This document shows positions 61,986 through 64,000 of a stretch of DNA of 64,000 nucleotides, piece by piece. Source of the DNA: Chrysemys picta bellii (lineage: Eukaryota); assembly GCF_011386835.1 (NCBI RefSeq), contig NC_088793.1:201500001-201564000 (forward strand), in the 5' to 3' direction. Both the position numbers and the translations under genes were made by a program. Each line of letters opens with the position of its first letter. Position 1 is the first letter of the stretch. Under the pieces are notes generated by a model that was not told the DNA's origin, ran no database searches, and saw only the letters and a program-made list of their open reading frames with translations.

Positions 61986-62070
61986 TGTAAGGAGTTGGAC
62001 TCACCCCTGCGGCACCTCCTGCTGGTCCTCCTCAGGAATTAGCTCATCCCAGCTCCTGAGCGCCCTATGC
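61986..62070 (+). mobile_element. 5' part of a solo LTR-like element (family of 10468)
   Basis: TGTAAGGAG...ACTCACCCCTGCGGCACCTCCTGCTGGTC...GGAATTAGCTC...CCAGCTC...AGCGCCCT matches the start of 10468. Confidence 0.8.
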
Positions 62071-62603
62071 TAGGGTTACCATTCGTCCGGATTTACCCGG
62101 ACATGTCCTCCTTTTGTGTGCTAAAAATAGCGTCCGGGGGGAATTTGTAAAGCACTCACAATGTCCGGGATTTCCCCCTCCCCCGGCAGAGCGAGCGGCT
62201 GGGAGGGCTGCAGGAAAGTCCCGGGCTGGACTCCGGAGCAGCTTCCTCCTCCCACCCCCCCCTCCCTGCATTCTGAGCCGGCCGGCAGCTCCTCCTCCTG
62301 CAGCCCGCTCCGGCAGCCCTGTGCAGGGCCAGGGACCGGGTTTTGTGTTGTGCAGGGGAGCTCAGCCATGTGTCCGGCTGGCACAGAGCCCAACACCCTG
62401 TTCTGAGCAGCAGGGTAAGGGGGGGCAGGAGAAGGGACAGGGAGGTTCTGGAGGGGGCAGTCAAGAAACGGGGGGGGGGGCTTTTGGAGGGGAGTGGAGA
62501 AAGTTTTGGGCAGTCAGGGTACAGGTAGGGGGTAGGGTCCTGGGGGGCAGTTGGGGGGGGTCTTAGGAGGGGGCAGTTAGGGGACAAGGAACAGGGAGTC
62601 TTA
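62071..62603. mobile_element. hAT (Blackjack-like) MITE, left part, interrupted by R2
   Basis: TIR TAGGGTTACCATTCGTCC; subterminal GTCCGG/CCGGAC repeats; G-rich interior; no right TIR within the window. Confidence 0.85.
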
Positions 62604-62605
62604 AT

Positions 62606-62905
62606 GGCTCTCTTAATGGCTCTCCATGCGTCTCTGGACCCTCTCAGCTGTCGGGCTTGGACGGAAACATTGCCTGAGGGTAGTGAGAGAATGGGTTATC
62701 GGTGAGGTGGGGGTGGGCGTGAGCCCGGTCAATAGGGGCAACCCCTACCAAGATCTGAGCCTTTTCTCACACGCCCGTTAGAGCTCGACATTATGCTGTT
62801 TGGGACCCCTCTTTGAGGAAAGCCTCTGGATTGCAAGTCCAACCGCTACCTCCTCGTGGTGAGAGTCGGTAACTGGCTTGGATAGCCAGGCGGATTGCGG
62901 AGGAC
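62606..62905 (+). ncRNA. HDV-like self-cleaving ribozyme of the R2 5' UTR
   Basis: P1 GGCTCTC (62606-12 or 62618-24)/GAGAGTC (62861-67); P2 GTCC-AA-CCGC (62837-46)/GCGG-A-GGAC (62897-905); P3 ACC/GGT with L3 TCCTCGT; P1.1 CC/GG (62868-69); P4 CTGGCT/AGCCAG; candidate catalytic C62891. Confidence 0.85.
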
Positions 62906-62974
62906 GAACCCACATCCCACGTTCAGTGGGGTGTGGGACGGGGTTGGGCAGCCCCATATGGTGCCACATGGATG

Positions 62975-63159
62975 CCCCCCTGGTAAGGGTAGCCTCCCCC
63001 AGGTACGGGTTGACTCCCCCTGGTAAGGGTTAGATTCCCCCTGGTAAGGGTAGTTTCCCCCAGGCACGGGTTAGTTTCCCCCTGGAAAGGGTTAGTTTCC
63101 CCCAGGTACGGGTTAGTTTCCCCCAGGAAAGGGTTAGTTTCCCCCTGAGAAGGGTAAAT
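62975..63159 (+). repeat. About 9 copies of a 20-21 bp tandem repeat CCCCC(A/T)GGTA(A/C)GGGTTAGTTT
   Basis: Units begin at 62975, 62996, 63016, 63037, 63057, 63078, 63099, 63120 and 63141. Confidence 0.93.
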
Positions 63160-63168
63160 CTTTTAGCT

Positions 63169-64000
63169 ATGGAAAAAAGTAATTTATATTTTTATACCGG
63201 ATTGGCGCTGGACCGGGTTAATAACGCCCCCGCTGTTGGCTTTGATGCCCCGGCTGACAGTGTTAAATATATTAGGGGTGTGATCAGGGTCGCTGGACCA
63301 ATGGATAAAATGGTGTGGACTATAATGAAGTCTCATGAGAATGAGAGTGAGAATCAAGTCCTCCCAGTGGAGCATGGAGAGGAGGTAGAGGAGAATGTTT
63401 GTGATGATCATGGTGAGGAGATTTTATCTATCTTACCGATGGTTTTTACAAGGGACACTTTTAATGATTTAACTATGGACAGTTTTAATCCAGATTTTAA
63501 GTATTTAAGTACATTTGATGATCCATATGTTAGGGAATCAAGTACTGATTTTAATAGGGATCGTAATAAGGATCTTAACAGTATTGGTAGTAATATAAAT
63601 ATATTAGAAAGTAGTTCATGGAAGGATGGGGTTTTTTATTTAGAGTATCCCGTTGATAGTTTTAATTGTCCAATATGTCCCCAGATATTACCAACATTTG
63701 GTAAATGGGCCAAACACATTAATGTGGTTCATAAAAGTAAAGCCATACGAGTTGTATGTAGTAAATGTGGAAAATCTTCTCAATATCATAATATAGCTTG
63801 CCACTACCCCAAGTGCATACCCAAGAAGGCGGATACCCCAATGAAGAGCCATACGTGCTCGGTCTGTGGGCTTGGTTTTCATACTAGATCTGGATTGAGC
63901 CAACACTGTAGACATAGACACCCTGCTGTGAGGAATGAGCAAAGAAAAGAAGATATGGCTGCTAAAAGTAAGATCAAAGAGGGATCGATTAGATCTCGTA
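63169..64000 (+). CDS. R2 retrotransposon protein, N-terminal 277 aa (partial, runs off the window): acidic N-terminal extension plus three zinc fingers
   Basis: Hand translation, no stop in 277 codons: MEKSNLYFY...FNCPICPQILPTFGKWAKHINVVHKSKAIRVVCSKCGKSSQYHNIACHYPKC...HTCSVCGLGFHTRSGLSQHCRHRHPAVRNEQRKEDMAAKSKIKEGSIRSR; ZFs at 63667-63732, 63757-63816 and 63856-63921; start context GCTATGG. Confidence 0.9.
   Translation, partial: MEKSNLYFYTGLALDRVNNAPAVGFDAPADSVKYIRGVIRVAGPMDKMVWTIMKSHENESENQVLPVEHGEEVEENVCDDHGEEILSILPMVFTRDTFNDLTMDSFNPDFKYLSTFDDPYVRESSTDFNRDRNKDLNSIGSNINILESSSWKDGVFYLEYPVDSFNCPICPQILPTFGKWAKHINVVHKSKAIRVVCSKCGKSSQYHNIACHYPKCIPKKADTPMKSHTCSVCGLGFHTRSGLSQHCRHRHPAVRNEQRKEDMAAKSKIKEGSIRSR

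Follow-up and report, generated by a model that had tools for sequence, protein, structure and literature searches.

Among site-specific retrotransposons R2 is the textbook case, and proteins of its clade A are in development for transgene insertion at ribosomal DNA (rDNA). R2 copies outside rDNA have been reported in five Drosophila species (PMC2718515), and R2 families without target specificity occur in flatworms (PMC5035012) and a cockroach (PMC7650587). In human cells, off-target insertions of R2Tg match the 28S gene at -19 to -25, counted from the insertion site, with T at -20 as the strongest position, and show a T/C-rich and then a T/A-rich run over the last 9 bp (PMC12222951). Here we describe the 5′ third of a clade-A R2 element at the end of a 64,000-nt stretch of the Chrysemys picta bellii genome (contig NC_088793.1, positions 201,500,001 to 201,564,000; hereafter the window). 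The copy has a complete 5′ end, lies away from rDNA and is preceded by 23 nt that resemble 28S; it was probably integrated at this 28S-like site by its own target-primed reverse transcription. Off-target insertions of this type have been seen before, in flies and in cell-culture experiments; this one occurred naturally. The first-pass annotation, which had proposed an R2-A element integrated off target, did not weigh the Drosophila record (PMC2718515). The literature searched contained no account of natural off-target copies of clade-A R2 in a turtle.

The Drosophila non-rDNA R2 and non-28S R1 copies (Stage and Eickbush 2009, PMC2718515) are likewise 28S-specific elements outside rDNA with target bases matching 28S, and in the full-length non-28S R1 copies a short 28S leader precedes the element (PMC2718515). 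The fly non-rDNA R2 copies are mostly incomplete and 1-2% diverged (PMC2718515), whereas here the host is a vertebrate, the element belongs to clade A, and a complete 5′ end is accompanied by an undamaged ribozyme and start of the open reading frame (ORF). The R2Tg off-target sites also match 28S at -19 to -25, with T at -20 and a T/C- then T/A-rich run before the nick (PMC12222951), but they stem from overexpression in cultured cells and are described by their 3′ junctions only, while the present case is an inherited germline insertion with a full-length 5′ end. Moreover, the window copy is a much closer match to 28S at -14 to -3 than those sites. Non-specific R2 elements (R2NS type) are likewise members of the R2 group away from 28S, yet these are entire families whose numerous young copies occupy unrelated sites; in the present case, protein and ribozyme still look 28S-directed and each locus showed a single copy.

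The identity of the element is seen first in its protein. An uninterrupted frame starts with ATG at 63169 and reaches the window end without a stop (277 codons), and the R2 frame is in fact stop-free from as early as 63034 (322 codons). No stop-free frame arose in 20,000 shuffles of the ORF, and the two alternative frames hold 13 and 47 stops. The first-pass annotation had rightly pointed out that this frame is absent from the ORF lists, which is because it runs past the end of the window. The translated features are the following:

63169..64000, plus strand: first 277 codons of the R2 ORF, truncated by the window end (translation; start Met in common with the Chelydra ORF, L004, below)
63667..63732, plus strand: zinc finger 3, CCHH (C167, C170, H183, H188; residues and alignment to R2 structures)
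63757..63816, plus strand: zinc finger 2, CCHC (C197, C200, H212, C216), includes IACHYPKC (residues and structure alignment)
63856..63921, plus strand: zinc finger 1, CCHH (C230, C233, H246, H251), followed by HPAVRNEQR (residues and structure alignment)

These are the three N-terminal fingers (CCHH, CCHC, CCHH) of clade A; their residues could be located as the annotation had it, and the two motifs it quoted, IACHYPKC and GLSQHCRHRHPAVRNEQR, are both present in the translation. Pfam returned for this ORF a weak zf-C2H2 match alone (E 0.0014). In a search of solved structures, residues 162-261 aligned with the R2Tg ORF (9dou, E 2.8e-16) and with two more R2 proteins (9nl3 and 9nl2), the three matches spanning E 3e-16 to 6e-15. 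As in the clade-A vertebrate R2 elements (R2Tg/TaGu and PlaMe of Platysternon, PMC12180492; 9dou, 9nl2, 9nl3), the three fingers are followed by HPAVRN. Compared with known clade-A R2, however, the turtle lineage is only 35-40% identical in the finger region and bears a 160-aa N-terminal extension before the fingers.

Among 1.8 billion representative proteins, no match to the finger region exceeded 49% identity, apart from one short match of 71% identity in a Gopherus evgoodei protein. A later profile search led to annotated fragments in Caretta caretta and Chelydra serpentina, whose loci provide the main comparisons:

L003, Caretta caretta OZ220767.1 (L003:9356-12420): aligns with window 62601-63049 at 79.6% identity (blastn)
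L004, Chelydra serpentina JAHGAV010000119.1 (L004:7393-12600): aligns with window 62604-63947 at 73.7% identity (blastn)

The protein collections contained no full-length protein of the turtle lineage, and its sequence was supplied by L004, a complete element of 4583 nt with an intact 1255-aa ORF. This ORF contains RVT_1 (E 1.6e-33), and its alignment to R2 structures reaches residue 1228; clade-A R2 structures match its reverse transcriptase (RT) and C-terminal regions at E 3e-228 to 1e-223, against 2e-81 for R2Bm and 5e-29 for LINE-1 ORF2p. L004 occupies the canonical 28S site. Upstream, 28S ...GGGAGTAACTATGACTCTCTTAA abuts the element start TGACTGTCCATGCG, and downstream the element end ...ACATAAA abuts 28S TAGCCAAATGCC. 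Both sides of the canonical insertion site (...CTCTTAAGG before the insertion point, TAGCC after it) are thus found in L004, whereas the window copy has no rRNA beside it and an 18/23 look-alike instead. This feature concerns the location of a copy and not the type of element. A placement with NeSL/Utopia was set aside, as L004 lies at the exact R2 site and R2 structures match far above other LINE (long interspersed element) proteins; no tree was built.

The window and L004 ORFs share their start Met and are 60% identical overall, rising to about 85-90% in the finger region. The ratio of non-synonymous to synonymous substitution (dN/dS) between them is 0.22 overall and 0.05 across the finger part, and the finger region is under strong purifying selection against this 28S-resident relative. 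The clade-A identity given in the first-pass annotation thus holds, with R2Tg and other R2 structures matched and a start Met in common with L004. The turtle lineage is R2 clade A, and its evolution has been under selection; it is also present in Chelydra, Caretta and Gopherus. Synonymous divergence (dS) from Chelydra is only 0.34 over the first 45 codons of the ORF (63169-63303) and 1.7-2.5 in the remainder, and the low value suggests an RNA-level constraint overlapping the start of the ORF.

L003 is an independent non-rDNA copy, with both flanks unrelated to those of the window copy. It is decayed, with an internal deletion, a 5′ UTR (untranslated region) that runs straight into the RT region, multiple broken frames and a ribozyme L3 altered from CGTGG to CACGG. 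Its 3′ end is precise, ...ACATAAA being followed by non-28S TAAGCATCAATG. Other searches gave more distant material or none. With P0001 as lead, a profile search brought up R2s of sharks and none of the turtle lineage; a scan of metagenome and prokaryote contigs with a conserved 19-mer of the element 5′ end gave 7 loci, none aligning over more than 20 nt and two without any alignment to the element; look-ups of the small 5′ UTR ORFs and of P0003 matched no contigs. A Logan contig of SRR23107473 (L002) carries a decayed related R2 with 67% nucleotide identity and stop codons in the finger region.

The three-way alignment A3 places window position 62617 (TGGCTCTCCATGCG...) at the first base after 28S ...CTCTTAA in L004, the canonical Chelydra junction. 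The window copy is therefore 5′-complete, as had been proposed. The window contains 1384 nt of the element, about 30% of the expected 4.6 kb (4583 nt in L004), and the description of the element as intact is right for these 1384 nt and reaches no further, the window ending at codon 277. The features around the boundary are:

62617..63168, plus strand: R2 5′ UTR of about 550-570 nt, in agreement with the roughly 560 nt first estimated; body begins TGGCTCTCCATGCG (blastn to L003 and L004, alignment A3)
62050..62598, strand not assigned: G+C-rich, G-run repeat-like upstream flank, not rDNA (GC 0.64, CpG observed/expected 0.35)
62594..62616, plus strand: 28S-like 23-mer GGGAGTCTTAATGGCTCTCTTAA directly before the element body (18/23 to 28S -25 to -3, in register with the L004 junction)
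62599..62624, plus strand: perfect 12-nt tandem repeat TCTTAATGGCTC, 2.2 copies (TRF, 100% match)
62976..63145, plus strand: 21-nt tandem repeat in the 5′ UTR, 8.2 copies (TRF score 214, 84% match)

At the gathering threshold, Rfam detects no rRNA, and no RNA family at all, in the whole 64-kb window; the statement that no rDNA lies upstream is borne out, the 23-nt look-alike being the sole resemblance to 28S. The flank 62050-62598 has no homology to the Chelydra or Caretta loci, and, aligned locally with the 170 nt of 28S before the insertion site, it scores no better than shuffled sequence except in its last 23 nt. A decayed 28S pseudogene was considered for the flank and rejected, as 200-nt flanks score at shuffle level against 28S beyond the last 13-23 nt. 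For these comparisons, the 28S reference was drawn from L004, L001 (a metagenome contig described below) and the oligonucleotide table of PMC13000458. On both strands of the other 62.6 kb of the window there is no site at 18/23 and one at 16/23.

The look-alike has GGGAGT at -25 to -20, including T at -20, and CTCTCTTAA at -11 to -3. The stretch before the element body agrees with 28S -14 to -3 at 11/12 positions in the window and 12/12 in L003. Support for a genomic target that resembled 28S comes from L003, where the 23 nt before the element are again 18/23 identical to 28S and include T at -20; the two turtle copies match 28S at 5 or 6 of the 7 positions from -25 to -19 and, in this register, both fit the R2Tg off-target pattern. 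The 12-nt repeat at 62599-62624 is the overlap of the 28S-like stretch with the similar first 8 nt of the element, and the Caretta copy has the same repeat arrangement at 10/12. As for the 21-nt repeat, related copies (L004 and L002) have fewer units, and the R2 frame is open through part of the array from 63034.

Since rDNA and R2 are difficult to assemble, we considered whether there is an insertion here at all, or instead a mis-join to an rDNA-derived R2 contig or a relocated rDNA fragment bearing R2 (an orphon). Chelydra gives some ground for the latter, L004 being an R2 with short 28S flanks (about 150-170 nt upstream and about 450 nt downstream) within a 5-Mb scaffold. No further rRNA lies within 10 kb, and it is an R2-28S orphon located away from an rDNA array. 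The window, though, has 23 imperfect 28S-like bases where L004 has about 150 exact ones, it breaks at the first base of the element, and its junction form matches that of the independent copy in the chromosome-scale Caretta assembly. Words of the locus were also sought in independent contig sets. The 1.2 kb of 62200-63400 are represented by 0.76-0.82 of the sampled words in 20 runs from 12 studies, and the 81-nt piece 62560-62640 by 3/3 sampled words in 11 runs under organism labels A, B, D, H and I, from 5 studies. In that piece, 60% of the possible words cross the junction, leaving about 6% odds that none of the 3 does. A mis-join is unlikely because junction words occur in contigs of five labels and five studies; this evidence is good but not conclusive. 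Taken with the form of the junction, it leaves the absence of an insertion a very improbable explanation. The insertion is not private to one animal.

The 5′ UTR holds a predicted self-cleaving ribozyme of the hepatitis delta virus (HDV) type, for which the following parts were mapped:

62606..62905, plus strand: HDV-like ribozyme, predicted self-cleaving (hand-mapped fold, J1/2 loop of 212 or 224 nt)
62606-62612 or 62618-62624, plus strand: P1, both GGCTCTC
62837-62846 with 62897-62905, plus strand: P2 (hand-mapped)
62848-50 with 62858-60, plus strand: P3 (L3 = 62851-57)
62861-67, plus strand: P1′ GAGAGTC, exact complement of 28S -13 to -7
62852-53 with 62868-69, plus strand: P1.1 (hand-mapped)
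62873-78 with 62884-89, plus strand: P4 (hand-mapped)
62891, plus strand: putative catalytic C (hand-mapped fold)

A permissive Rfam search gave weak HDV-like matches at 62827-62902 (19.4 and 18.5 bits), below the gathering thresholds of 44 and 37 bits; these models do not accommodate a J1/2 loop above 200 nt. Rfam found no HDV-like match on L004 either. The core CCTCCTCGTGG is exact in the window, and the conserved P3/L3/P1.1 core CCUCCUCGUGG, the most conserved sequence of R2 ribozymes (PMC5035012), lies unaltered at 62849-62859. The nested double pseudoknot, with pairing in P1, P1.1, P2, P3 and P4 and a C in J4/2, can be formed, all 26 pairs of one fold and all 7 of the alternative P1 being canonical. 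P1′ is invariant in three species (window, Chelydra and Caretta), and one-sided wobble changes in P4 and P2 of the relatives retain pairing, although the fold was mapped by hand on three related sequences and covariation support is thin. The P1 partner GGCTCTC occurs twice in the window copy, each time with one G-U pair, and the second site is mismatched in Chelydra and Caretta.

Because P1′ exactly complements 28S -13 to -7, the predicted cut of this lineage's ribozyme in the 28S co-transcript lies 13 nt before the insertion site. Cleavage at -13 is documented for the R2 of Nasonia vitripennis; in zebra finch and numerous other R2s the cut falls at -28, and a J1/2 loop above 200 nt is the norm (PMC3774820). 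The turtle lineage would thus differ from zebra finch R2 (cut at -28, PMC3774820) in its cleavage site as the window copy does in lying outside 28S. With the Nasonia type of ribozyme, which cuts inside 28S (PMC3774820), it shares P1 pairing with 28S -13 to -7, a large J1/2 and the CCUCCUCGUGG core, but in the window copy P1 is made from 28S-like bases or from the element's own first bases, and cleavage is a prediction. The copy gives sequence-level support for -13 ribozyme cleavage in a vertebrate R2. In the decayed L002, the ribozyme core carries a G to A change. A shark-type R2 on a JGI metagenome contig (Ga0262470_10648, L001:1-300) has a canonical 28S junction and a P1′, CCCGCT, that pairs by eye with 28S -28 to -23; R2 ribozymes commonly cleave there, whereas -13 is predicted in the turtle lineage.

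These features can be combined in a simple course of events. The R2 protein would have bound and nicked a genomic look-alike of its target (GGGAGT at -25 to -20 with T at -20, CTCTCTTAA at -11 to -3). The full-length complementary DNA (cDNA) would have borne the complement of a 28S leader produced by ribozyme cleavage at -13, and this complement would have annealed to the near-perfect match at -13 to -3, yielding a junction of the form seen in 28S. Annealing of the cDNA leader complement has been proposed for 28S insertions (PMC3774820). In this case the pre-insertion site would already have carried TCTTAATGGCTCTCTTAA. The off-target integration postulated in the first-pass annotation is upheld in that the junction has the form expected of R2's own machinery.

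The same ribozyme lends itself to another account, which we consider a close rival, though less likely, namely that 62605/62606-62616 were not genomic but are a 28S leader (-14/-13 to -3) carried on the ribozyme-cut RNA, in an otherwise identical off-target retrotransposition. Where the site offered no upstream match, the leader could not anneal and would have been kept after a flank ending in TCTTAA. The pre-insertion flank, ...ACAGGGAG or ...TCTTAA, would then abut the 3′ flank directly, without TGGCTCTCTTAA. The exact and invariant complementarity of P1′ to 28S -13 to -7, with its Nasonia precedent (PMC3774820), predicts just such a cut, and the 11/12 and 12/12 agreement at -14 to -3 is much tighter than the loose R2Tg off-target logo. 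Similarly, ...T(C/A)TTAA precedes the stretch in both non-rDNA copies, which have TTAAT in common at -18 to -14, base composition shifts at 62598/62599, and non-28S Drosophila R1 copies likewise carry 7-28 bp of upstream 28S (PMC2718515). Yet in the register that an RNA-borne leader requires, the flank misses the -19 to -25 rule (2/7 in the window, 4/7 in L003, no T at -20 in either), and GGGAGT at -25 to -20 becomes a coincidence, though a less unlikely one within a G-rich flank. In addition, one base departs from 28S (A to G at 62607), and a TCTTAA annealing to the cDNA should yield a seamless junction without leader.

Several observations weigh against integration at a genomic look-alike. 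The 3′ junction and the empty site lie beyond the window, so that a pre-existing target and an RNA-borne leader are not separable on the present sequence. The 18 bases 62599-62616 are rich in T, C and A, unlike the G-rich flank, and may thus have come in with the element. At -18 to -16, where 28S has ACT, the window and L003 both have TTA, and the 12-nt repeat arrangement common to them would be due to chance if the targets were genomic, with a probability of about 0.003 by a rough count. As to the reality of the junction, it is not visible which of the 3 sampled words cross it (about 6% odds that none does). Also, most of the locus words are found in runs of only 5-37 million letters (samples S3 and S4 of study P3, 2012); random shotgun sequencing would not be expected to give this for a single-copy site, which suggests clone-based data or more than one copy. 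Nonetheless, a rough coincidence count favours a genomic target resembling 28S over the RNA-borne leader by about one order of magnitude, and it is the reading we prefer. In both, the copy was integrated by R2's own machinery, and a relocated rDNA fragment of the L004 type is incompatible with either.

A further possibility arises from the second P1 partner. In the window, unlike in Chelydra and Caretta, the element's own first bases, GGCTCTC, pair perfectly with P1′, as would be expected of an R2 sublineage with relaxed or changed targeting, or one spreading from non-rDNA copies, whose 28S-like leader has been internalised and whose ribozyme is independent of 28S. Over 28S -23 to -15 (62596-62604), the window and L003 are alike at 7/9 positions, while either one matches 28S at 5/9, and a model for duplicated junction 28S becoming part of the element exists (PMC3774820). 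Against this stand a finger region about 85-90% identical to that of the 28S-resident Chelydra element, with dN/dS 0.05, a P1′ that is still an exact match to true 28S, and the unrelated flanks of the two copies. Besides, there is no P1 partner upstream of 62606, so 62594-62605 would not be heritable through ribozyme-cut RNA. We therefore regard such a sublineage as unlikely. The relaxed specificity that the first-pass annotation offered as one explanation leaves no sign either in the fingers, so strongly conserved relative to a 28S-resident element, or in the ribozyme, which still pairs with 28S. Were there nonetheless, as we rather doubt, a turtle R2 sublineage with a 28S-like leader absorbed into its own 5′ end and a ribozyme excising the element from any host transcript, it could spread from copy to copy outside rDNA and would represent a vertebrate R2 nearing rDNA independence.

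Whichever bases the target supplied, a copy outside rDNA would escape the turnover of the array and has no known promoter; as its ribozyme can find a P1 partner within the copy (GGCUCUC, twice), processing of a read-through transcript would in principle be possible. In the window copy, no damage is seen in the ORF part, the start codon or any ribozyme helix, and the CpG observed/expected ratio of the element is 0.44-0.54, compared with 0.28 in the rest of the window. This is compatible with a fairly recent copy, without dating it. The first-pass annotation had called the copy probably young: the undamaged ORF part and ribozyme agree with this, but junction words under five organism labels mean that it is not a private recent insertion.

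The understanding of R2 is unchanged by this locus, non-rDNA R2 copies being already documented in Drosophila. The window copy is a sheltered and so far undamaged template, comparable with rDNA copies for dating escapes. Its main value lies in the natural evidence that it brings on R2 target tolerance. Natural germline off-target copies reveal the target positions tolerated in vivo by the R2 machinery, and in both independent turtle copies T is retained at -20, together with 5 or 6 of the 7 bases at -25 to -19 and CTCTCTTAA beside the nick, in agreement with the R2Tg logo.

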